Shown piece by piece: positions 11,557 through 50,091 of a DNA stretch of 64,000 nt. The notes under the pieces were generated by a model that had not been told where the DNA came from, ran no database searches, and was given only the letters and a program-made list of their open reading frames with translations. The translations under genes were made by a program, and so were the position numbers. Numbering within the stretch: the first letter of the stretch is position 1; each line of letters begins with the position of its first letter. The stretch comes from Octopus sinensis (Eukaryota), in NCBI RefSeq assembly GCF_006345805.1, contig NC_043009.1, positions 35,030,001 to 35,094,000 of the forward strand, read 5' to 3'.

Positions 11557-12847
11557 CGAGGGGCGTTCAATAAGTAATGCCCCTCACCCACTTCCCAGAG
11601 CAGTAGAGCAACGAAACTTGGCACAGTTATTAGTCTTTTTCTACATAGGAACCACCCAGAGTTACGCATTTCTCCCATCGTTTGATGCAGCTCTGGAGAC
11701 CGTTTTTGTAGAAGACCCCAGCTTGGTCCGCCAACCACGATGTGACTTCAGAAATCAAGGCTGCATCATCTGGGAAACGCTTTCCTTTCAAAAACAACTT
11801 CATGATTGGGAAGAGGTGAAAATCAGAGGGTGCAAGGTCAGGAAAGTAGGGGGAATGGGGAGGAGTTCATAGCCATACGCCTGTGCTTCTGATCTGGCGA
11901 CAAGCGAGTTGTGGACCGGAGCGTTGTCCTACAGGAGGAGGATGCCTTTGCTGATCTTGCCCCGCCTCTTGATTTTGATAACTTCTCTTAATTTCCTCAA
12001 AAGTGAAGCATAATAGGCTCCTGCAATTGTGGTACTCTTTGCCAGGAAATCTGTCATCACTACTCCGTCCTGGTCCCAGAAGACTGTGAGCATGACCTTG
12101 CCAGCGGAGGGCTGCACCCTTGCCTTCTTTGGAGGGGGTGAGTCACGGTGCTTCCACTGCATTGACTGGGCTTTGGTCTCTGGTTCATAGTGATGGACCC
12201 AGGTTTCATCCTGTGTAATCAGTCATTTGAAAAATTTGGACTCATCTTCTTGACACATCTCCAAATACATCCTCGAGCACTCGGCGCGTTCTTGCTTCTG
12301 GAAAGGTGTGAGCAACCGGGGAATCCATCTGGCAGACACCTTTTGCATATGCAAATGGTCATGAATGATAGTTTCCGCAGACCCGGTACTAACCTTGATC
12401 TCATAGGCTATTTGGCGAATAGTTATGCATCAATCTTCCAAAATGGCAGCCTCAACTTGACGGACAGATGCCTCATCAATGGCAGAAGGGGGCGACCAGA
12501 TCTGGGAGCTGTTTCCACAGAATTCCGACCATGTTTGAATTCACGATGCCAGCGTTTTACAAGGTTATATGATGGGGCATCATCACCATAAGTTACTTTC
12601 ATTTCATCAAAAGTCTCCCGTGGTGTGCGTCCTTTCAAATACAAAAACCGGATCACTGCTCGACACTCAACAGGCTCCATTTCACACTTGACTCGGTTCA
12701 AACACCTGTAAATCAGAAACCACAATTAGTTCAGAGCTGTAATTTGCCACTTGCTCTATAGAGATATAGATAATTGCACATGCAAAATTTCAGCTAGATC
12801 AAACAACTGCAAGTGGGTCAGAGGCATTACTTATTGAACGTCCCTCG
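11557..12847 (-). mobile_element. Full-length mariner transposon (1291 bp, irritans-like termini)
   Basis: TA TSD at 11555-56 and 12848-49. ~28-bp TIRs CGAGGG(G/A)CGTTCAATAAGTAATGCC(C/T)CT. Transposase pseudogene inside. Confidence 0.95.
11630..12680 (-). pseudogene. Mariner D,D34D transposase (~350 aa) with 3 nonsense codons and 2 single-base frameshifts
   Basis: MEPVECRAVIRFLYLKG...WIPRLL...TQDETW...DNAPVH...YFPDLAPSDFHLF...EKD*. 34 residues lie between the 2nd and 3rd Asp after frame correction. Confidence 0.93.
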
Positions 12848-24560: not shown

Positions 24561-24763
24561 CAAAACCAGGAAGCATCACGTGGCAGTAGGACCTCACATG
24601 ATGAGGTAGGTCGGCTGACTGATGATTGAGAGTCGCATCAAATGGCTTTTAGAGGCGGAAGCCAAAACTACAACAGGATTGTCCCACAGAGAATGTTGCG
24701 GTTTACTTTTGGGTACCTTCTCGTATGTATGCATGTACATATACACGTATATGTATATATATA

Positions 24764-24813
<50 letters not shown>

Positions 24814-24828
24814 CGGTGTATATGTAAG

Positions 24829-24875
<47 letters not shown>

Positions 24876-24907
24876 ATATAATTCGGTGCATATATAAGTA
24901 TATATGT

Positions 24908-24938
<31 letters not shown>

Positions 24939-24993
24939 AGTATATATATATATATAGTATATATATAGGTATACAGGCATATATGTATATATA

Positions 24994-25031
<38 letters not shown>

Positions 25032-25632
25032 TACACGTATACATACATACACATCTTGTGTCTGCGTTTGTCCCCCATCACCGTTTGACAATCGATGTTG
25101 GTGTGTTTACGATCTCGTAACCTAGCTATTCGGCCAAATTAACCGACAGAAGACGTACTTGGCTCGAAAGAATAAGTCCTGCGGTAATTCGTTCGCGTAA
25201 AACCCTTCAATGCAGTGCTCCAGCATGACTGCAGTCAAATGAGTGAAACAATTAAAACGTAAAACAAAAAGATATTTCTGATTAAATTCTGTTCAATTAA
25301 TAAGCAACATAATTCAATGAACGGTAGTGTCTAACTTTGCATATCTGTCGGTGAGACTGAATATAATCGATTATATTGATTTCAATAATGAACACATGTC
25401 GATTCCATTAGCAAATACGGTAAATTTAAATTTGGAAAGATTTGAACGATCCTCAGAGTAACCTAACTAAATAGAAAAAAAAAATTCTATTTTCTATCGT
25501 TTCTGTACTCCCATTTTACTACATTCCACTACGCAATTGCTGCTTCTAGTAGAAATAGTAAGATTACTCTCAACTCTCAGTAAACAAAAACGGGACACAG
25601 GACATCATTTAATAGTACTTACACTATATCTT

Positions 25633-29976: not shown

Positions 29977-31090
<1,114 letters not shown>

Positions 31091-31103
31091 ATATGTATGT
31101 ATT

Positions 31104-31143
<40 letters not shown>

Positions 31144-31499: not shown

Positions 31500-31800
31500 C
31501 GTTTCACAGTATAACTGCTTCTGGGGCGCAACCACTATTGTGTGGATACAACTTTCGCCTTAGAATCTCTAGTGTGCATTCGGCCCCACTGCTCTCTCCT
31601 TTATAAAGTGTCACATACGTCAAAGAAGTGTATGCTGCGGGAACTGTTCAAGACAGACCCTTTCTTCCGGTTATGCCGCACTCATAACAATCTTTCAAAT
31701 CCAATAAATATAGAAATGAAGGGGAAAATACGTTTCACGCTTCTGAACTCTGCCTTTTGGAAAAATTTCCATACTCCAATTCCTGCCGTAACAATGTTTG
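31500..31800 (-). mobile_element. Possible Tc1-like transposase N-terminal remnant
   Basis: Fragmentary KFFQKAEFRSVKRIF...GSVLNS...LEILRRKLYP resembles Tc1-type HTH regions. Confidence 0.4.
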
Positions 31801-31816
31801 GGATGCTTGTGTGTGC

Positions 31817-31849
<33 letters not shown>

Positions 31850-31920
31850 TGTATGTATGTATGTATGTATGTATGTATGTATGCATGTTTGTATATATGC
31901 ATGTATGCATGTGCGTATGC

Positions 31921-31967
<47 letters not shown>

Positions 31968-32167
31968 AAGCGAGAGAGAAACAAAGAGAAAGGTTTATAT
32001 AGGGAGAGACACTTATACATATAGACATATACATACGTATATTGAGTTCTACACCAGATTAGCATCGCAATGCTTAAGCGAAATATGTGTGTGTGTATGT
32101 GAGTGTGTTTGAAAGAGAGAGATAGAGACAGAGAGAGGGAGACGGAGAGACAGAGAGAGAGAGAGAG

Positions 32168-37162: not shown

Positions 37163-37278
37163 CTTGCTTTATAAATGACCTGACCTTTGTCATAAACATG
37201 GAGCATTTTATTTTGAACTGTGACGTCATGGAAGTAGGAATACTTCTCGTTTGGGAAATACAAATCTGGAACCCATAT
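37163..37278 (-). CDS. Next internal exon (116 nt, phase 0/2) of the same Cys-loop channel (loops A and E)
   Basis: Acceptor tcatatcattctaaag, donor CAAG|gtaaga. Translates as IWVPDLYFPNEKYSYFHDVTVQNKMLHVYDKGQVIYKA(R), which aligns without gaps to GlyR [39 protein letters not shown]. Phase is compatible with the 49981-50091 exon. Confidence 0.95.
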
Positions 37279-37517
37279 CTTTAGAATGATATGAAAGAAA
37301 GAAAGTATTTATAAAGTATATAATGTGGAGGATATATTTCTCGTCTGTTTAAATGTGTGTTTTTGTTTCTGATAAATTAGTATAGGAAACTAATGAGATC
37401 GATACTTACATATAAATCAAACTGGTATGCAACAAATTTCTGTCACAGCAAGAGAGAAATGTTTTGAGATTTAGAAAATGGTATATCTTGCAATACCTAG
37501 ATTTATATGTAGAAACA

Positions 37518-37518
<1 letters not shown>

Positions 37519-37575
<57 letters not shown>

Positions 37576-37584
37576 ACACACACA

Positions 37585-37624
<40 letters not shown>

Positions 37625-37638
37625 CACACACACACACA
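37519..37638 (+). repeat. (CA)n microsatellite
   Basis: Direct inspection. One of many; others include (TA)n 6493-6606 and 43228-43318, (TACA)n 46350-46425, (TTA)n 48634-48683. Confidence 0.95.
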
Positions 37639-39096
37639 ACTCACACTCTTGGTATACCACATATCGCTAGCATATCTAAGACTACATTTCAAAGTTTGAC
37701 TATTTTCTTTCTTATTGGAAAATATTTCGACCCTCGAGAGCTGACACTCTTCAAGACTACAGTGGTCTCACACTGGAGGACTGCTTCAAGTGGTGAAACG
37801 CTTCTGATCCTCATTCACTTGATTATGATACGGAAAGTTTTCCAACATTGCGATTGATTTAGAAGACATTTCCGATCTTCTGAATAGCCCCTTTTTTTTT
37901 CACATGAGGTAAGTACCACACACACACACACACACACACTCTCTCTCTCTCTCTCTCACTCTCTCTTACTCTCTCTCTTGCTCTCTTTCTCTCCTTGTCT
38001 CTCTCGCTCTATCTCTCACACATGCTCACACACACATACACGACACACACGCACGCACACATAGCTTACTTTTCCGTTACTGGAGGGATAAACAAAAGAA
38101 CTCCATCTAGTGAGATTTTTATCATATAATATACATAAGGTTTAGATGCGAGCTACTATCATTTGATGTCTCATATAACACAATAGTTGTACGAACTTGT
38201 AGAGCGAGCCGTGTATTAAGAGGCAGTCATTCAGACGCAAAATGCATCATAGCTGCTCTCTAGGAAAAAGCAAGAAGGATGTGAACGAGAAAGTGTACGA
38301 AGAAAGGGTACGAGAAAAGAAAGATGAAGGGATGAGAGATAACACTTGTGTCCCTTTGGCCAGTTAGAATGAGAATTAATACTGATTGGTGTAGTTAATT
38401 TGAGAGAGCTAAATCTATATAAGTGGTGTTTTACAGTTCGATCACAGCAACCTATCAAGATGCTTACATGTAGTGAAAATTTCTGATCTGGTTTCGGTAG
38501 GTCGGTGGAGTGATTAGATATAAAGGATGAGGTCTTTAGGCTATGTATATAACCTGGACCTCCTTATCATATTAACACAAGGTGTGCATTCTTGAGCGAC
38601 GCTCCACTTGTTGGTTTGTGGTGGATGTAAAATCTAAGAATCTCACCGAGCTACTAAATTCGAGAACCGAAATTTTCACGAAATGTAAGTGCTTGGATTA
38701 AGCATGCAGTTTCATCTTTCAAGCATTTCCTTAAAGAGAAGCAATGTTGTATTTATCAGCATCTAAATCTGGTGATCCTGTGGATAACAAGTGATGTATA
38801 GAATGCTAAGCAGTAAGAGTGAGTTTGTAACATCGTACATGGAATAATTACCGTTAATTTCTGTATCAAAAGTGTCACTAGCAGTTTAATAGTGTAAGAA
38901 CTTCTGCGATTTTTCAAGCGATCCATTTTCTTATTCGCTCCCTTTTACAAATGTAAAATTGAATGTGATTAAAGGGTATTTCTAAATTAATAGATACTCA
39001 AATTAGGAAAGAAAACTTTCGGAGAGTTCTTTAATAGTTATTTCTTGCGTTCAACTCATAGTAATTGTATTATACGAAAAGATTCTCGCATACCTA

Positions 39097-39126
<30 letters not shown>

Positions 39127-39137
<11 letters not shown>

Positions 39138-39445
39138 ATTCGAGACAAAACCACTATTTTAAAATCAAACAAGGAAAGACTTAATCAATACATAAAATTT
39201 TGATACTGATTAGAAGATCGAAAATCCACCTGAAGAATGTCAGTAGCAGACATGAAACAATTGTAGTGGCGGTTTATTTAATTTATATTAAAATTTTATG
39301 TATTGATTAAGTCTTTCCTTGTTTGATTTTAAAATAGTGGTTTTGTCTCGAATTATATTATATAATATTTTACTATAAAATTGGATTTAACCCTAAATCT
39401 GATTTTTCCCTGTAATTTTGGATTCATTCCCTAATATTTATTATT
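39127..39445 (+). mobile_element. PLE-type pseudo-LTR element with 75-bp perfect inverted repeats enclosing an HHR, inserted in (TA)n
   Basis: 39127-39201 is the exact reverse complement of 39290-39364. An ~80-bp tail and then (TA)n follow. Confidence 0.75.
39226..39269 (+). ncRNA. Canonical minimal type I hammerhead ribozyme
   Basis: ccac-CTGAAGA-atgtc agtagca gacat-GAA-ACAATTGT-A-gtgg. All three stems pair, loop III is palindromic, and the GUA triplet predicts cleavage after 39265. Confidence 0.85.
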
Positions 39446-39579
39446 ATATATATATATATATAGTTTATAATTCTAGCACTTCTTGGGAATACATACATAT
39501 TATGCATATCGTGCATATGACCAAAAACATATTTTAAATTTATGCTAATTGAATTGATAAGCTGTAACAGAAGGTCATG

Positions 39580-41090
39580 CTTGAATTTTGAGTTTAGATT
39601 GTTGTTTATGTAATCAAGGGTAGAATGTCTTTTTCCTTCAGTTGTTATGTTTGATTTTCCTACGATACAGAAGTTGCATGTGGTGCCTCATCCCTTATAT
39701 TTGCAGATCTTAGCTCCGATTCTTCAGTGTATACGAAAGTTATTCAAGCCTCTGTCTTTAACGTTCCACATTATGTTAAAGATGTTGTATGTATTTTGTT
39801 CTTATCTCGAAACCAAGCAAAGTGTTGCACATATCTTTTCGTGATGGCATTTCCAATCATTTCTTGGTAAGTTTTATAGTCCTACTCATGCCAGTGATGC
39901 AAGCCAATTCCCTTTGTAGGTACATATTGCTCAGATGACGGTTATCAGGGAATTCATAATTACCAGAACTCTAAGGATTGTTCCTAATGTTATTTTTTCT
40001 AATTGTTATTGAAGATCAACGATCCTATATTGGGGCGCAACGATAGTTAAATTTAGTCGTGTTTCTGTTAAAGATCTTGTGATAGTCATGTGACAGTAAA
40101 TGTCTGTAAGTTAGAGAAATCGTCTAGATATATCTGTAGTCATTTTGACGTTATATAAGTTTGGTTCGATATAGGTTATATTAGTGTAGAAATTGATCTT
40201 TCTATATGGCATTGTAACATGGGGATGCCTCTTTGAAAGTTGTTTCATCAGAGGATAGGTTGAAAACACGCCTACTAATGCTATTAATTATTGTCTCATT
40301 ATTCATGGTAGATGTTAAAGCCCCTCACAATGTAGGTGCTGTCCTTATTTGGTGTATGGAAATTTTCCTGTTTTCCAATACAATGATTCATGTTATGTCT
40401 ACGGAACTAACATCTTAATATTAAAGCTGAATTGACTAAGTATTTTGCGTATATTTTCTTATCTTATCCATATCTTGCCATTCTTATGTAATATTTCTAG
40501 GCTGTCCTCTCCATATAACTCTATGCTGGGTTCTTATATTTCATTAAAGATATGTAGTATGTAGATGCCAACGAGATCTGCCACTTCTGCTCCATCATGG
40601 TTATATATGGCAACATCAGATAGTTTATCTCCATTCTTTTCACTTAATAAGTCTTATCGCAACTATTCCCTTGTGTCCATTATAATGGTTATATCGGTAT
40701 TAGTAAGAACTGTATATGCTTTACAAAACTTCAATTATTTTGGAGGAGAATTTTGGAGATAAAGCGTATGATGCCGTTCTGAAAGAATTTGCAATTTAAC
40801 TTATCTTTAATTTTCCTGAGCTATTCAATGACTTCACTGCTACATATATATATATATACTTAGATGAACGTAGAGAAGGCTTTGATGTGTTGCATAATGT
40901 TATCTACAATAGGTTTGCTGGTTATACCTATCTCCCTATTTGTGGGATTATTACTACTGATGGTTTGGCGAGAATTTATCTTTATGGCTCCTCAGGGATC
41001 CGAAAGGTTTCAGTGGGGTGAGTCGTTCTACTCTTCGATTTTAAATTTCATAGCTTGGGTTTTGCCTCATCATTGATTAAATTAGAAGTC
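39580..41090 (-). pseudogene. Degenerate Neptune-type PLE ORF (RT plus GIY-YIG)
   Basis: Minus-strand readings INDEAK...LRSHKDKF...EIGITSKPIVD, DGAEVADLVGIYIL, SISRRVFNLSSDETTFKEASPCY. Many stops. Confidence 0.8.
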
Positions 41091-41858
41091 GTCGACTATT
41101 TCATATGCTGTTTGTTATATTACTGATTAGCAATTCCCTATGAGCGCGGTTATGTACGTCAGTGACATTTGCTTTTGTTTTATCTGCCTGGGGAATTCTT
41201 AAAAGGGATGCATGTAATTCACGTTGGTTGGTATTGGATTTGTGGTTGAATCCAGTAATTTTAAATAATGCGTCACTCGTTGTATACATTAGTATGCATA
41301 CATGCATATATACACACATACGCACGCACACACACACACACGTGCGCACACACACACGTGCGCACACACACACGAGCGCACACACACACGGGTATATACG
41401 AATGTTTTGCTTAATGCAATTGATATATGTTGAACGCAAATTCTTGCAAAGATCCAAGTCTAATGCAAGGAAAATAAAGATTAAAGTTCCTAAAATATTT
41501 TCTCTCTTCATCTGTGTATCTATCAATTTTGAAATCCTCTACAATCGCGTGTATAATAACATAATCACATCCAAATTCACGATATTTTAAAGTGGATCGC
41601 TCGAAATATTGTGGAACTCTTTTCATATGAAAGCACTGGAGGCACCTTTAATCCACAAACAAAGCATTATGTATGTGTGTGTTTGTTATCAGTTTCATTT
41701 GTTCCCTCTCAAGTCGATGTCCATGTTTATCTTGATGGATTTGATTGTTTTCATATAAGGTCACCTAAACATTTCTTTAACACTTAAGGACGCGAAGGGA
41801 AGGGGAAATCTGAATTAACAATACACTTGTTGAGTCCCGAAGGAAATACGCAAGTGAC

Positions 41859-41961
41859 AGAAGAAGAAGAAGAAGAAGAAAAAGAAGAAGAAGAAGAAGA
41901 AGAAAAAGAAGAAGAAGAAGAAGAGGTAGAAGAGGAAGAAGAAGAGGAAGAAGAAGAAGAG

Positions 41962-42049
<88 letters not shown>

Positions 42050-42056
42050 AAGAGAA
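41859..42056 (+). repeat. Compound (GAA)n-(TAA)n-(GAA)n microsatellite
   Basis: The TAA block 41963-42021 is nested in GAA/GAG repeats. Confidence 0.95.
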
Positions 42057-43238
42057 AAGTTCATAGGAATTACTGTCATATATGCAATCAGGTTGATGAA
42101 ATAGATTTCCTTGATTATAATGTATATCTTTAAATATTAAATTCAAGTTCGTTAAATTACCTTTGATGGAAATTAATACTTCTGTGGTCATCATATGCAA
42201 AAGTGATTAGGTGTAGTGAGGATTAAAAGTAGACTAATCGTTAAGAATTATATAGTAATATGCTTTGAAGTAATTTTAATATTTTATAGTTATACATGTT
42301 AACTCTAGTGTACTATGTAAAGAATTTATATGCTGAATTATCCGTTAAGTGAATTGAATATTTAACGTTTCAACTATGAGGGCGACAGTTATAGAAGGAA
42401 AGAAGGGCAATATTCAATTTAAATGATACAAAGATTGACTTGTATTTCTGTATAATAGGATGTGTAACTTCATGAATCATGGATGATGAAGTGAAATTGG
42501 GAATCTAATGCTTTGAGTTTACATAACAGAGGTGATTTTATTTGAATGAATGTATACAAACATACAGAAAAGCACACACATATATAAATGTATACAAACG
42601 TAAACGTATGCGTGTGTGACTGACTACAAATTTATAGAGCTGAACACGGAGCGCAAAAAGCAATTAAATAAGATATATTTACGGAAATTAACGAAGTGTG
42701 CGGGTTCAAGCGAAAGAACGCGTATGTATGTTTGTATATATGAGCCTCAGAGTTATACAGCTATTTTGTCTAATAGCCTTCATTCAAAAAGTAATTTTTT
42801 TACATTACGTATATAGAAGAATTTGTGGGTTTTGCAAATAGCGAACTAAAACTTTAAATGAAAACATTTCGTATATAGAATAAACTATGGGTTTTGCAAG
42901 TAGCGAAAACATTGAAATAAATATATATTAAATTATCATTAATGAAAATAAAGGCGAGAGAGTGTGAGAGTGTGTGGCAAATAAAAATGGAAAATTTCAC
43001 CTGCAACGAATTGATATTGTTTATTACATTAAAATCCACTCCGCAATGAATACAATGAATATTTAAATTTGGGAAAAAACTTGTTTAAATATTCAATAAA
43101 CTTCAGAAATCGAAATTGCAGGAAATTTCTTGGAACATGAACTTATGAAAAAATTTCCAGACTGCTTTCCTTTAGTAACTCTCACATGCCTAACCAATAA
43201 GCAGCTTTCTCCATTATAATATGGATATATGTACATGT

Positions 43239-43322
<84 letters not shown>

Positions 43323-43589
43323 TGTGTGAGTGTGTGTGTACGTGCGTGTAGGAATATATGTCAGCACTTACAATTGGGTTTATTCCAAACAATCTAATCA
43401 TTGTTACAATATGTTTTATTGTGAGCGACTCTATGTCATATTACGTTATAGTACACGTGTACATCGCTAGTTATTTTACGAACGGTATAAATGATGTTCC
43501 ATTTCATCGAAATGTGGTTTATACATTCAGAAAAAAATGTGACACAAATTGGAAAGAAAATATATTTGTATAGTACATTATTATAATTA

Positions 43590-43796
43590 AGGCGGTGAGC
43601 AAGCAGAATCGTTAGCACACAGGGCAAAATACTTGGTGGTATTTCTTCCGTCTTTACATTCTGAAATCGAATTCCGCCGAGGTCGACTTTGTCTTTCATC
43701 CTTTCGGGGTGCATTAATATCAGTTGCGTACTGGGGACGATCTAATTGACTGGCCCCTCCCCACAATGTTCATGCCCTGTCCCTATTGTAGAAAGC
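43590..43796 (+). mobile_element. tRNA-derived SINE
   Basis: aggcggtgagcaagcagaatcgttagc...ttccgccgaggtcgactttg head. Confidence 0.8.
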
Positions 43797-43818
43797 ATTA
43801 TTATTATTATTATTATTA

Positions 43819-43866
<48 letters not shown>

Positions 43867-43867
<1 letters not shown>

Positions 43868-44627
43868 TTTCCTTCTTTCTTCAAATTTTCTTCCGTTTCT
43901 CGCCGAGTGTTTTCCATACACCTAGGGCAGAGAAGCTCATTCGCAGATTATACACGCAAATTCACAGATAAAATATGTATTTAAAAATTAATAAATAAAT
44001 AAATCCATGGATGGATTTTGTTTTCACAGCGATAATGCTCTTCTCAGTACATGAACCGTTCCAGTTAATACGATTTTTTGCACTTCCTGTTGGGATGGTA
44101 AGCCTGGAATCATTTTCAAATAGGTTTCAGTACCTTTTTTTATCATTCCTAGAGATCCTACAATCACTGGTACTGTAGTCGCCTTGAGATGCCACATCTT
44201 TTCAATTTCTATTAGCAGGTTTTTATATTTACTAATCTTGTCAAATTCTTCCACCGCTATATTGTGATCGCAAGGGATACTCATGTCAATTAATAAACAC
44301 ATCTTTTTTGTTTGATCTCTTATAATAATATCCGGTTTATTAGCTTTTATAGTCTTTTCGGTCTGTACGGGGAAGTTCCATAGAATCGACACATTTTCTC
44401 CCTCAGTCACAGCTTCAGGATGGTGTTTATACCATTTGTCAGCAGTTTTGATTGTAAATACTGGCCGACTCTGTCATGTCTTGCGTTATATTCTGCAGGT
44501 GCTAAGACTCTGCACCCCGAGATTAGGTGGTCTATTGTTTCAATCTCATCGTTACAAAATCGTCATTTTGGGTCAGCTCCATTTTTTATCACATTGGCTT
44601 GGTAGTTCCGGGTTAATAAGCTTTGGT
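43867..44627 (-). mobile_element. 5'-truncated Dong/R4 LINE (CCHC remnant, RLE endonuclease, 3' UTR) in (TAA)n
   Basis: ORF 44024-44410 ILWNFPVQTEKTIKANKPDII...LIDMSIP...KISKYKNL...VPVIVGSLG (PD..D RLE motif). (TTA)n on both sides. Confidence 0.9.
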
Positions 44628-44676
44628 TATTATTATTATTATTATTATTATTATCATTATTATTATTATTATTATT

Positions 44677-45033
44677 CAGTAGTCTTATTTTTATAACGTC
44701 CTTTCACTGCACTACCGAGCACAGCTCTGTGTGCCTTGGGTATGAGCTGAGGTTTGCTGTGATGCTCTTATGGTTACCTAGTAGTGCTATTTTCTGTATG
44801 TTATATATATTTGTTTGTCCTGTTGTTTTATGTTATGTATTTGTCTGAATATTTGTTTTCATACCTAGTGCGCCCACTATGATAGGAATTGTTTCTGTTT
44901 TTAGACCACATTAGAATTACCTCTATTGCCGGGTCTTTGTGTTTTGAAAGTTTCTCCATTTCTTTTAGAGAAACGTTGTCATCTGTTGGTATTGATACAT
45001 CAATTAGGAAGCATTTTTTCTTCATGAACTCTG
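44677..45033 (-). mobile_element. Second 5'-truncated Dong/R4 LINE (different subfamily) in (TAA)n
   Basis: KKCFLIDVSIPTDDNVSLKEMEKLSKHKD. Its 3' UTR differs from the neighbour's. (TTA)n on both sides. Confidence 0.85.
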
Positions 45034-45093
<60 letters not shown>

Positions 45094-46396
45094 GTTCTTC
45101 TTCTTCTTATTATTATTATTATCATTATACTGACAGTTATCTTATACTATACTGAGAGAGATCAATATATTCGTCTATTTTAGTAGTGACTATTCCATCG
45201 CTAAATTCTGAATGTCAGTATATATATTTACCGTATGAATTCGTGGCTGATTCAGCAAAATGCTACTTGACAATTATAGAATAAGGAAGGCAGCTATATG
45301 CAATATAAAACCATAGCATTAGATATAACCGTAAGTAGATATAGAGGTGTAAACGCTCTCGCTTTAGTTGTTTGGCGCACGTATACACGTTCGTTCAAAC
45401 TTTCACAAGGACATAAGCATACGCATACTCGTGGTTTTGCGCACATACGCTCAACCAGCGAATTAAATAAATACTAATAAAGTTAGTGCAGACAAATGGC
45501 TAGTGATACAACTCCGTCTGGCAAAGAGTCACAGTTTCTGTGGTAGGATTCACTAGGCCTGGCCGATTTACTTGTAGCGTCATGAATATGGCCATTGTAT
45601 ACCGATTAATGTGAGATAAATACCAACTTCAGCCTGTCAATAAATATCGTTCACCATGAGATGAAAATGCAAAATACCTACGCTTATCCACACAGTTGGT
45701 CCTATCACTGGCATTAATACTTTCTGTAGACCATCGATTATTTCATTAGCCGTTCATACAAAAAAATACACATCTACTATGTTTGTATTTATATACATAC
45801 TCGTGACTAAACTAGTGCTGTACGTATATCGGCCAGACCTAGTGAGCAACACCACAGAATATGTGACTCTTCACCAAGCGGAGTCATATCACCAGTCACC
45901 TTTCGGCATTGATGTTATTAATATCTATTTAATTCGCTGTGCGAGCGTATTTGTGCCAAACCACGCGTGTGCGTATTCTTCTATCTTTGTGAAAATTTGT
46001 ACGAATGACCGTACGTGCGCCAAAGAACGTAAGCGAGAGCGTTTGTACATCCGTATATACTAATGGTTATATATCTAATAATTTTTTTCGCAGTATTGTG
46101 TATTTGTTTCTTTTTGCATCTGGTATTTGTTATTAGTAATCTTCTATAAGAATGAAGCTGTATCCCTTAGTTTGCTGTTTTATAGACACATAACAGGTAG
46201 AAATCTAGCGAAACAGACGTTACTTTAATGAGATACACCTTGTAATCACCTGGTTAATCAGATAGTTGTACTGGTTAATCTATGGTTTTCTCCATTTTTT
46301 TTATTATTTACACACACACACACACATATATATATATACATATATGCATGCATACATACATACATACATACATACATACATACATACATACATACA

Positions 46397-46478
<82 letters not shown>

Positions 46479-47989
46479 ATATATATATGTATGTATAAAC
46501 ACACACATACAATACACACTAACACACAAGCATATCTGCAATTCATAGAACCGAAAACACACTCTAAAGCATTAGAACAGTAATATATATTCTAGGAAGT
46601 TAGAAGTTATGGTAACTCCATGACCGTCCTAATTTTTAACTTCCTAACACACACACATACATACACACACACACACACGTACATATATAGTGCTTGTCTC
46701 CACTACCTGTATTGGTTCTTCTACGTCCCTTTAACTTAGCTGTTCGGTAAAATTGACCAACCAAGAGAGTAAGTACCAGCCTTAGCAAAAGAAGCAGCAG
46801 GGTCGATTCATTGGACTAAAATTCTCCAAACGCGGGACCCTGTATGGGCGCGCTCAAATGACTGAAACAAATAATAGGTGAAAGGAAGATTATTATTTTA
46901 TTGTTTTATTATATTACAAAACCTTATTGTATTTTAATGATATTTATTATACTGTATTGTGTGTCTTTCATATTGCATTATAGTAAATTTAAGAAAAACG
47001 AGATATTTTCTTTAAATTATATTCTGCACAGGCAAACCTCACCTTATACCCGTACCCACTTATTTAATAAGTCATCAATATTTGGCTAATAACCCAAATA
47101 TTTCATGGATAGTTGCTATGACAATCTCACCATAGCATTCACAACTCTAAAGCCACGCACCCATTCATGCAGACCTAAATCAAACACTTTCATATTTCCT
47201 AATAGAAGTAGTGTGCTGGTTGAGTTGGTAGAACGTCGGCGAGATTCCTTCTTCAAGTTCTCTGTACTGCGCGCTTCAGTTCCCGCCTCCCACCGAGGTT
47301 AACTTTACTTTACATCCTTCCTTCATTGATAAATAAAGTATCAGTACTGCGAAAATACAGGCTCTTCTTCTTCTTCTTCTTCTTCGTTGTCGTCATCGCT
47401 TTCTCATTTGTCTTCTTCATTTCTCTACCTCTTACCCTACAGATGCTTTCTTCAGGTTTTGAGACCTGACCATGACACTCTGTATATACTAAAACTTCAT
47501 AAGGAATTGACAGACCCAGAAGAAGGGACGATTTCTTAAGATACTCAGTCAGGGATGTGTTGCAGTTTAAACACGAGAAGCGATAAATAAGTGCAAACGT
47601 GAAAATTATCCGTTATAAAAGAAATTTACTTTTGAATAGTAGCCTTCAGTATTGTTTCATTCACATTCTCTGACCCCAACATTTTAATATAAATGATGGA
47701 AAAGTTGGAGAAGAGATTTAAGGCGCACATGAATAAAACAAAAATAACAATGCCAATTTAGGGCTCAAAATATTATAAAAAGAACTAGACCTCATCTTCT
47801 GTGATACAAACATATTCTCACACAGAAATATTGGTAGAGACGGAAAACATTTTCCCTTGTTATTGAGTAGGGAACGCAGTGTCCATTATCCTTTAAGGGG
47901 GATCTGAAACGCCGGTTTTGACTTCAAAATATTCCGTCTCTCCATCAGGAGTGATCACTTTCACTCGGGTGTTCTCACACAGCTCTCAG

Positions 47990-48490
47990 GTATGAAGTTA
48001 AAGTTAGCAAGGAATTCGAAAGTGAGGTTCTTTCTGACAAAAGTGGGATCTCTTCTTCTAAAAGAGGCTGAAACATGGACGCTCACTAAAGCATTAAAGA
48101 AGCAGATGGACGGTTGTTATACGAGGATGCTTAGAATGGCACTCAATGGCACTCAATATCTCATGGAAGAATCATACAACAAACGCTGACTTATACCAGG
48201 GACTACCAAATGTAACATTGAAAATACAGCATAGAAGGATCAGGTTAGCTGGACACTGCTTCAGACATACCGATGAAATTGCTAACAAGTTTATGCTCTG
48301 GTGGCCAGCGGAAGGAAGAACCAGGAGAGGAAAGAGGAAGACGACCTATATCGACATTTTGCTGGAGGATACTGGTATGGAAGGGGTACAAGAGCTGAGG
48401 ACCATTATGGAAGATCGAGATGAGTGGAGAAAACGTGTGGAAACAATCATGGGGCGTCCTGAGGGACGACCTAGATAGAGATAGTGATGG
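47990..48490 (+). mobile_element. RTE-clade LINE 3' fragment
   Basis: AETWTLTK...DGCYTRMLRMALNISW...RRIRLAGHCFR...GRTRRGKRKTTY...EDRDEWR. A 10-bp duplication (aatggcactc) causes the frameshift. Confidence 0.9.
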
Positions 48491-48629
48491 ATGAATTTAC
48501 ATTTACACTTTGCCCTACGTCTTCACTGCCACCATTCATTTCTCCATTTTCATTATCTGTTGGTGAAGCATTATTTCGATTTTCTACTTTCCTTTTCATC
48601 TTTTTCATTTCCATGTGTGTTAACCGCCC

Positions 48630-48685
<56 letters not shown>

Positions 48686-48689
48686 CAGG

Positions 48690-49290
48690 TGGCAAGATGA
48701 CAGAAATATTAGCACGGCGAATAAAAATTCGTAGCTGCATTTCTTCAGTCTTTACGTTCTGAGTTCAAATTACTCTGTGGTTGACTTTGCCTCTCATCTG
48801 TTCGGGTCCATAAAAGAAGTACAAGTTGAGCACTGGGGTCGATGTAATTGACTAGACCCCTTCCACCAAATTCCAGTCTTTGTACCTATAGCTGTAATAT
48901 AACAGAATCGTTAGCGCGATCGTACAAAAGTTTTTTTCCGTTCTCAGTTCGAATGCTGATGAGGTCGACACAGCCTTTTATCTTTTCGGGGACGGTAAAA
49001 GAAGTACCAGTTGATCACTTGAGTTGATGTAATCCACTTGTTCTTTTCCCCAGAATTAGCTCGTGCGAAAATTTGAAATCCTGAGGCAGCAAGTCAGCAG
49101 AATATTTTATTAGCACGCCTAAAAAAATACGTAGCGACATTTCTTCTGACTCTTTACGTTGATCAAATCCTGCCGAGGAAAAATTTTGTCTTTCATCCTC
49201 CCAGGGTCATTATAATAAAGTAGTAGCTGAGCACTTGTGTCGATGTAATCTAGTTCCTTAAGTTTGTGCCCAAATTCGAAAAATTTGCAT
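48690..49290 (+). mobile_element. Cluster of three degenerate tandem SINE copies
   Basis: The pattern gaat...ttagc...aggtcgac/ttgac...gtaccagttgagcact...gtcgatgtaat appears three times. Confidence 0.65.
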
Positions 49291-49980
49291 TATTTCTTGC
49301 ATTATAATTTTAAGTAAGATAGTTCTACAAAACCAAATGGTAGCGAGATATAATCATGGCAGAAGAGAGAAAGAGAGAAATAGAGAGAAACTGGACGAGA
49401 CACAGAGAGAAGGAAAATAGAAAACCAAAAACAGAGAGCTGGAGAGAGAGAGAAAGAGAGAGAAAGAAAGAGAGAATGAGAGAGAAAGTGAGAGAGAGAG
49501 ATATTAATGTTGTATTTGATATCCGTTTTTCTTCCCCACTGTCTTACATAAGATACTTTTGGCTGTGTTTCTTGTCTCTCGGCAACAGCTTCTTGTCAGA
49601 TAGTATAACTAAAGTGCCTTTCTATATGACTGCCTAAAAGCGGAATCTCTGGTAACCATACGATTTTGTCATAGCCCTCACACCCTTATTTCTCTGTACT
49701 GACTACCCACACGCTGTTGCTTAAAAAAAACCCTCTTCAATACAGCTAATATTACTTCTCTCCGTTTCTTAACTATTAAAGACTTTTACTGTGCTCTTTA
49801 AATTTAAGTACCATCTACCTTATTCTACAATATTAAAAAGGGTTCTTCTCTGGATCTATATTTTTAGGACAGTTTCCCCCAAGATCTGTAATGTCAAGAG
49901 TCTTTGCCATTGATATATAATTACCAGTAAACTTTGTAATATGTATAGAATGACACTGTAGGAAAGAGAATTTCACCTAC

Positions 49981-50091
49981 CTTGTGTATGAGCTTAGCAT
50001 CTAATTCGAGGTATTCAGCATCAATGAGATCGTAGAAATCCAATCGTTTGTCTGTCCATTCTTGGGTAATTAAGGCATTCAGGGAGTAGTC
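49981..50091 (-). CDS. Internal exon (111 nt, phase 0/0) of a Cys-loop ligand-gated ion channel subunit, glycine-receptor/GluCl-like branch (loop D region)
   Basis: Minus strand: polypyrimidine acceptor ttttgttcttctctgcag and donor AAG|gtaggt. Translates as DYSLNALITQEWTDKRLDFYDLIDAEYLELDAKLIHK, matching the Cys-loop motif DYxxxxxxxQxWxDxRL (GlyR: DYRVNIFLRQQWNDPRLAY). The intron before DY is at the position I recall for GlyR/GABA-A genes. Confidence 0.93.

Follow-up and report, generated by a model that had tools for sequence, protein, structure and literature searches.

In the glycine receptor (GlyR) branch of the Cys-loop channels, an amino-acid-agonist motif has been defined by Lynagh et al. 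that comprises a loop B Tyr, a loop C Thr and Tyr, a loop D Arg and a loop E Ser (PMC4338433). The distal carboxylate of the agonist is held by the loop D Arg together with hydroxyls of loops E and C, and both S129 and R65 (human GlyR alpha1 numbering is used for the binding site throughout) contact the agonist carboxylate (PMC4338433). There is precedent for movement of such a charge, as the Arg that binds the alpha-carboxyl of glutamate arose at differing positions, in loop G in ecdysozoans and in loop A in lophotrochozoans (PMC4338433, PMC4178172). Aplysia GluClAc1 and its Lottia orthologue, neither of which has the loop D Arg, give poor responses to glutamate, and R98S abolishes the response of GluClAc2 (Blarre et al., PMC4178172). 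Here, a stretch of 64,000 nucleotides from Octopus sinensis (NCBI RefSeq assembly GCF_006345805.1, contig NC_043009.1, positions 35,030,001 to 35,094,000 of the forward strand; the window) was analyzed, in which two exons encode loops D, A and E of a GlyR-branch subunit with Thr at position 65 and Lys at position 129. The two altered positions occupy adjacent strands on the complementary face, and Lys or Arg at 129 without a basic residue at 65 was found across a molluscan subfamily in which the carboxylate-binding charge may have been moved from loop D to loop E.

Both exons lie on the minus strand (Table 1), with canonical splice sites at all four ends and open reading frames. Exon A was delimited from the sequence with its flanking ag and gt and by tblastn against GlyR and molluscan relatives; its translation, DYSLNALITQEWTDKRLDFYDLIDAEYLELDAKLIHK, corresponds to residues 79-115 of the RefSeq protein XP_029643878.2 (GlyR alpha1 D57 to about K93) and holds loop D with the WxDxRL motif. 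Exon B translates as IWVPDLYFPNEKYSYFHDVTVQNKMLHVYDKGQVIYKA(R), the terminal Arg codon being represented by its first two bases; it corresponds to residues 116-153 plus two bases of R154 (GlyR alpha1 I93-R131), and holds loop A (WVPDLYFPNEK) and loop E. The end coordinates given in the first-pass annotation, made from the letters of the window, coincide with the outer boundaries of these exons. Its reading of an ungapped alignment to GlyR alpha1 over D57-W68 and W94-R131 was also borne out, the sole gap being a one-residue insertion between W68 and W94 that falls outside both segments, and the substitutions R65->T, S129->K, F63->L and R119->H were all recovered from the codons and the alignment. 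R131 is retained. The spliced peptide covers 76 residues from the ligand-binding domain of a Cys-loop receptor; it matched Pfam Neur_chan_LBD (PF02931) at E=7.6e-14 (52.1 bits, cut-off 26) and the solved GlyR alpha2, alpha3 and alpha1 chains at E about 1e-15, with GABA-A beta behind at about 1e-13. Judged by these scores, the similarity of the exons to the GlyR family is far beyond chance.

The peptide matches XP_029643878.2 (P0158 in the set of relatives) at residues 79-154 with 100% identity. RefSeq names this 412-residue O. sinensis protein "glycine receptor subunit alpha-2-like"; the gene is already annotated, and spans about 450 kb of a 72 Mb chromosome-scale record. No further receptor exons (signal peptide, Cys-loop, transmembrane segments TM1-4) were found in the 64 kb by tblastn queried with human GLRA1, whose numbering was checked at 15 landmark residues, with eight relatives from molluscs and with the full-length octopus protein; only the loop D/A/E exons lie in the window because of the length of the gene. 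The O. bimaculoides orthologue, XP_052828367.1 (P0266), is identical over the 76 residues and 96.3% identical overall, which indicates that the gene is under purifying selection. Relatives were recovered by exhaustive HMMER searching and by two further searches with profiles or sequences. In a word-indexed protein search the 76-residue peptide found no match, a sensitivity artefact, as the exact protein was recovered by the later searches. That the exons are a dead-gene relic or a chance similarity is hardly credible: just two exons are present and their surroundings are repeat-rich, but the frames are open between four canonical splice sites, the match to GlyR is at E about 1e-15, the peptide is fully identical to a complete RefSeq model (412 residues) and equally to the orthologue in O. 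bimaculoides, and the missing exons are accounted for by the 450 kb span. The pseudogene reading was regarded as effectively refuted on the open frames, splice sites, full RefSeq model and conserved orthologue.

XP_029643878.2 carries PF02931 and PF02932, a signal-like N-terminus and four membrane segments. Its Cys-loop (C-x13-C), encoded outside the window, reads CPMDLRRYPMDTQVC; loop C reads ECDPTMQFDSGNFSC, in which the Cys pair is that of the GlyR/GluCl-type second disulfide. The PAR motif (DAVPARISLG), which is linked to anion selectivity, stands at the cytoplasmic end of M2, and the channel is predicted from it to be anion-selective. Against solved chains, the full-length protein scored best with GlyR alpha2/3/1 (4.6e-107 to 1e-97), followed by GlyR beta (4e-85), GABA-A beta (7e-83) and GluCl (2.4e-76), and the best 60 solved relatives listed were all GlyR, GABA-A or GluCl subunits. 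It is therefore virtually certain that the exons are two internal coding exons of an annotated GlyR/GluCl-branch pentameric Cys-loop channel subunit, and the earlier assignment to this branch holds on the GlyR alpha scores, the PAR motif, the Cys-loop and the loop C disulfide. A chemotactile or nicotinic origin was rejected, in agreement with the first-pass annotation, on the 60 of 60 GlyR/GABA-A/GluCl matches, the PAR motif and the GlyR-type loop A.

Retrieval of the full-length sequence and a phylogeny had been proposed at the outset; neighbor-joining (NJ) trees were built of the protein and its relatives. Lys or Arg occupied position 129 in 67/357 relatives collected, and in 0 of those 67 was Arg or Lys found at position 65, which was T, Q, E, S, V, I, H or D; the canonical R65/S129 pair was present in 232/357. 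The named K/R129 proteins were all molluscan, from cephalopods (octopods, with three paralogue groups in Octopus as well as Argonauta, and a cuttlefish), gastropods (patellogastropods, vetigastropods, and neomphaline, caenogastropod and heterobranch groups) and bivalves (pteriomorph, heterodont and protobranch). When 182 near-full-length sequences were placed in an NJ tree, the K/R129 proteins formed exactly one clade, with a bootstrap of 61.5% after columns 65 and 129 were removed; with the same columns removed, the window gene grouped with its paralogue XP_029644196.1 at 93%. Both genes are on one chromosome, and their O. bimaculoides orthologues have consecutive accessions; the third octopus paralogue is XP_036364398.1.

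The subfamily was defined by K/R129, no R/K at 65, H119, R131, M117, aromatic F159 and F207, and grouping with similar proteins. The window gene carries T65, K129, H119, R131 and M117 and clusters with the K/R129 set. The conserved T/Q/E65 plus K/R129 signature very probably marks an old, mollusc-wide orphan subfamily that includes gastropods, bivalves and cephalopods. The altered site had initially been described in a single gene; the site is genuine, and it is no peculiarity of that gene, the signature being common to the subfamily. No description of the loop E basic signature was found in the literature, and the compilation of functionally characterised channels by Courtney et al. (10.1101/2025.04.02.646353) includes no clade member. 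Of the 41 octopus channels expressed in that study, the supplement names only the DopC and AChRB genes; neither the accession XP_029643878.2 nor the peptide was found in the part searched. A chiton protein (P0241, Liolophura sinensis) with N65/S129 fell within or next to the K/R129 group and may be an intermediate, with the Arg lost and the Ser kept, or a reversion. Separately, P0001, P0002, P0003, P0010, P0011, P0019 and P0051 carry two or three tandem copies of the loop D-E segment, probably through errors of assembly or gene prediction and not as real repeat proteins.

Site statistics were calculated for 40 clade members vs. 117 canonical R65/S129 relatives. At position 65 the clade has T in 21, Q in 7, E in 6, V in 2, S in 2 and D in 1, and the canonical set R in all 117; at position 129 the counts are R30 and K10 vs. 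S115 and T2. In these alignments, invariance is shifted from position 65 to position 129. The rewiring is also wider than was visible at first reading, and extends to positions 67 (E in 27 clade members; canonical mostly R/K/Q), 157 (the loop B Glu; Q26, K10, R2 and E2 vs. E96) and 202 (the loop C Tyr; variable vs. Y107). E157 was kept within the clade by the window gene and its orthologue only. Residues H119, R131, N102, E103 and S158 are invariant in the clade, and the aromatic box is kept (Y99 in 38/40, F100 in 35/40, F159 in 39/40, Y/F161 in 40/40 and F207 in 35/40), as is the PAR region (R252 in 40/40, P250 in 35/40). In O. sinensis the principal face presents E157, F159 and Y161 in loop B and F, S and F at 202, 204 and 207 in loop C, and the loop D Arg and loop E Ser/Thr of the amino-acid-agonist motif are both absent. 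As loop C of the window gene is two residues longer than that of GlyR, its alignment is uncertain. Two of the four substitutions originally read as rewiring, R65->T and S129->K, are informative. The other two are not: H119 occurs in all 40 clade members and also in 81/117 canonical relatives, so R119->H says nothing on rewiring, and L63 is a minor lineage variant of F/I/L.

The account that we tentatively favour is that of an annotated octopus GlyR-branch gene in a mollusc subfamily whose carboxylate-binding charge was moved from 65 to 129. At its core is the replacement of loop D Arg65 by loop E Lys/Arg129 in binding the acidic group of the agonist, which the sequence comparisons leave as a real, if somewhat doubtful, possibility. 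Arg65 has been lost in the subfamily, in which a basic residue is fixed at the neighbouring loop E pocket position 129. The conserved aromatic box (Y99, F100, F159, Y/F161, F207) would keep hold of the agonist amine, Lys/Arg129 would bind the acidic group in place of Arg65, and Thr65 could provide the hydroxyl that is given by Ser129 in GlyR. With the amine held by the box and the acid by K/R129, the agonist would be a small zwitterion; the channel would still be gated by a transmitter of the amino-acid type, its recognition relocated and probably retuned. Such a swap seems to fit the pattern of conservation better than the idea of a monoamine ligand.

Several observations weigh against this account. 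GluClAc1, a molluscan relative that likewise has no loop D Arg, responds poorly to glutamate (PMC4178172). Position 65 is Glu in 6/40 and Asp in 1/40 clade members, and position 67 is Glu in 27/40; acids at these positions could neutralise K/R129. The loop B E157, which helps to bind the amine in glycine and GABA receptors, is Q/K in 36/40, and Y202 is not conserved, so that the site as a whole departs widely from the amino-acid-agonist motif. The mature extracellular domains of O. bimaculoides and O. sinensis differ at just three residues, all in loop C (M223L, S227A and F230V); S227A is the T204 equivalent and F230V the F207 equivalent, Argonauta keeps S and F, and the pattern suggests a drifting or shifting principal face. 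Support for the K/R129 clade is only moderate and drops to about 30% once shorter sequences are added, and the chiton N65/S129 sequence then nests inside the group. For these two reasons a single origin of the K/R129 group is the best estimate and is not firmly established.

The same departures from the motif could instead reflect a switch of ligand class, in which the loss of R65, E157 and Y202 would accompany a non-amino-acid ligand (a monoamine, histamine, acetylcholine/choline, betaine or protons) and K/R129 would have another role, such as pairing with E67 or with acidic residues of loop C. Changes at motif positions 65, 129, 157 and 202 in most clade members (motif as in PMC4338433) are in line with this, as are the retained amine-binding aromatic box and a loop C that is often acidic (e.g., YEENNF, DDDDEYF), and gating by choline, tyramine, dopamine, serotonin, histamine and protons evolved in other GABA-A-like branches (10.1101/2025.04.02.646353). 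Yet a strictly conserved, pocket-facing cation fits oddly with a purely cationic ligand, and the window gene retains a GlyR-like look (E157, S158, F159, Y161 and an SGNF loop C). Anionic dopamine-gated channels are described as nematode-specific, octopus DopC1 is nAChR-like and cationic, and the proton-gated Alv-a1-pHCl has the canonical R65/S129 and is no model for this site. A switch of ligand class was judged unlikely.

The subunit could alternatively be an accessory member of heteromers that uses its principal (+) face alone, as in GABA-A beta, with no agonist bound at the complementary T65/K129 face and K/R129 kept for assembly or modulation. GABA-A beta is also without the loop D Arg and loop E Ser (Q/G in the beta-like match P0011), and the (+) face of the window gene is the most GlyR-like in the clade (E157, F159, Y161, S at T204, F207). 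Co-assembly partners are at hand, given the paralogues on the same chromosome and the consecutive accessions of their O. bimaculoides orthologues, and several octopus channels pass no current as homomers. Canonical partners are harder to find: the named cephalopod sequences collected are all T65 plus K/R129, no canonical R65/S129 GlyR-type subunit from a cephalopod was among the relatives collected in the searches, and a cephalopod venom-gland preprint found no glycinergic-type channels and listed the anionic cephalopod groups adjoining molluscan GluCls as unknown. Moreover, invariance of K/R129, R131, H119 and N46 across molluscan classes would be unexpected in a face that is not used, and in O. 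bimaculoides the part that changed is loop C of the (+) face. We consider an accessory role improbable on this evidence.

If the charge has indeed moved to loop E, molluscs including cephalopods would carry an old GlyR-branch chloride-channel family that reads the acid group of its agonist by a loop E Lys/Arg and not by the loop D Arg; this broader statement is rather doubtful at present. Were it true, it would add another independent relocation of the carboxylate-binding charge in this receptor branch, and might be accompanied by specificity for a transmitter that has so far been assigned to no molluscan anion channel. The map of fast inhibitory transmission in cephalopods is sparse, and since the searches found no cephalopod R65/S129 subunit, the K/R129 family could be the cephalopod route to fast GlyR-branch inhibition. 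The strict conservation of a basic residue at this new place in the pocket leads to a hypothesis on positions 65 and 129 that is both clear and cheap to examine. The subfamily is also a natural experiment in the movement of ligand recognition round the subunit interface, extending the work on arginine relocation in GluCls (PMC4338433). The name "glycine receptor alpha-2-like" should not be read as a function because two of the residues that mark amino-acid recognition in this branch are absent, and should the channels be no more than ordinary accessory subunits, a caution on annotation would be the chief result.

The intron between exons A and B looks like a lineage-specific split of an ancestral exon, at the junction 49981/37278, as A and B are continuous in other relatives; the ancestral exon measures about 224 nt in vertebrate GlyR and GABA-A genes. 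In relatives P0004, P0005, P0008 and P0009, which are open reading frame (ORF) fragments, A and B are fused in one frame, with intron-like sequence ending in Q (cag) upstream, and the frame stops just after the Arg. Inside the 12.7 kb octopus intron, two ORFs seem to resemble the C-terminal tails of retrotransposon proteins, and gave no significant Pfam match. Elsewhere in the window, Pfam scans of ten long ORFs gave a single significant match, to a Mos1 transposase helix-turn-helix (HTH) domain, in an ORF that is apparently what is left of a mariner-type transposon within the large downstream intron. A tandem duplication was also observed, and dense microsatellite and low-complexity tracts run through the whole window, where they yield many spurious long ORFs (YIHT..., CVCV..., poly-S/L/I); these tracts, with a GC content of about 35%, fit an octopus intron landscape.

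Table 1. Features of the window, numbered from its first letter; codons are named by the equivalent human GlyR alpha1 residue.
Feature	Position	Strand	Description
Exon A	49981-50091	-	111 nt, phase 0/0; ag / GAC...AAG / gtaggt; upstream ...ctctgcag
Exon B	37163-37278	-	116 nt, ends in phase 2; ag / ATA TGG...GCA AG / gtaaga; upstream ...tctaaag
Intron between exons A and B	37279-49980	-	12,702 nt, gt...ag; repeat and transposon debris
R65 position	50065-50067	-	Thr codon ACC; loop D Arg that binds the agonist carboxylate in GlyR
F63 position	50071-50073	-	Leu codon TTA
R119 position	37198-37200	-	His codon CAT
S129 position	37168-37170	-	Lys codon AAA; loop E
ORF in intron	44024-44410	-	128 aa
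ORF in intron	48146-48478	+	110 aa
ORF, transposase	12423-12725	-	100 aa; Mos1/mariner transposase HTH_48 domain, E=2.8e-10
Tandem duplication	30062-31104	+	Period about 540 bp; 249-nt copies 100% identical, 300-nt copies 97%; each unit with (TC)n/(TA)n/(TATG)n microsatellites
Low-complexity tracts (examples)	24594-25091, 31542-32112, 41101-41590, 41777-42200, 46266-46583

Compared with described channels, the locus stands apart from the octopus chemotactile receptors, DopC1 and AChRB1, which belong to the same superfamily and the same animal and have novel octopus ligand specificities. Those are nicotinic-like, with DopC1 cationic, whereas the window gene stands on the GABA-A/GlyR-like side with PAR and the WxDxRLxF and WVPDLYFxNEK motifs. 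Octopus dopamine-gated DopC1 is a cationic alpha9/10-like nicotinic relative (10.1101/2025.04.02.646353). A relation to lophotrochozoan dopamine-gated channels, which had first been suggested as comparators, was rejected, these being nAChR-like and cationic. Alv-a1-pHCl of the annelid Alvinella is also a lophotrochozoan GlyR-like anion channel and responds to a non-amino-acid stimulus, protons, but it differs in keeping the canonical residues, Arg in loop D (YFRQTW) and Ser in loop E (VMYSTR). A likeness to its site was rejected for that reason, and its gating tells nothing on a T65/K129 site.

GABA-A beta subunits are anion-channel subunits whose complementary face likewise has no loop D Arg or loop E Ser/Thr (Q and G), and they serve as the model for a face unused by the main agonist; they differ in having no basic residue at the 129 equivalent, belong to another clade, and are more distant (7e-83 vs. 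4.6e-107). The GlyR alpha subunits (GLRA1-4) are the best solved relatives, with 44-49% identity over the two exons, and share the Cys-loop, the loop C disulfide, PAR, loop A WxPDxxFxNEK, loop B ESF(G/A)Y and R131; the octopus gene differs by T65, K129, H119 and L63 and by its longer loop C. Aplysia GluClAc1 and GluClAc2 are glutamate-gated chloride channels of the GlyR branch in molluscs. Ser95 stands in place of the loop D Arg in GluClAc1 and its Lottia orthologue, and in GluClAc2 an extra Arg at a relocated loop A position binds the carboxylate; both are precedents for moving the binding charge. In the alignment, GluClAc1 has YLSMTW, an Arg at loop A 101 and Ser129, and the clade of the window gene has no loop A Arg. 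GluClAc2-type recognition requires the loop A Arg at 101 together with the loop D Arg (PMC4178172, PMC4338433), where the window gene has Pro101 and Thr65. The GluClAc clades combine Arg at loop A 101 with Ser129, whereas the window gene, with Pro101 and Lys129, belongs to a separate clade.

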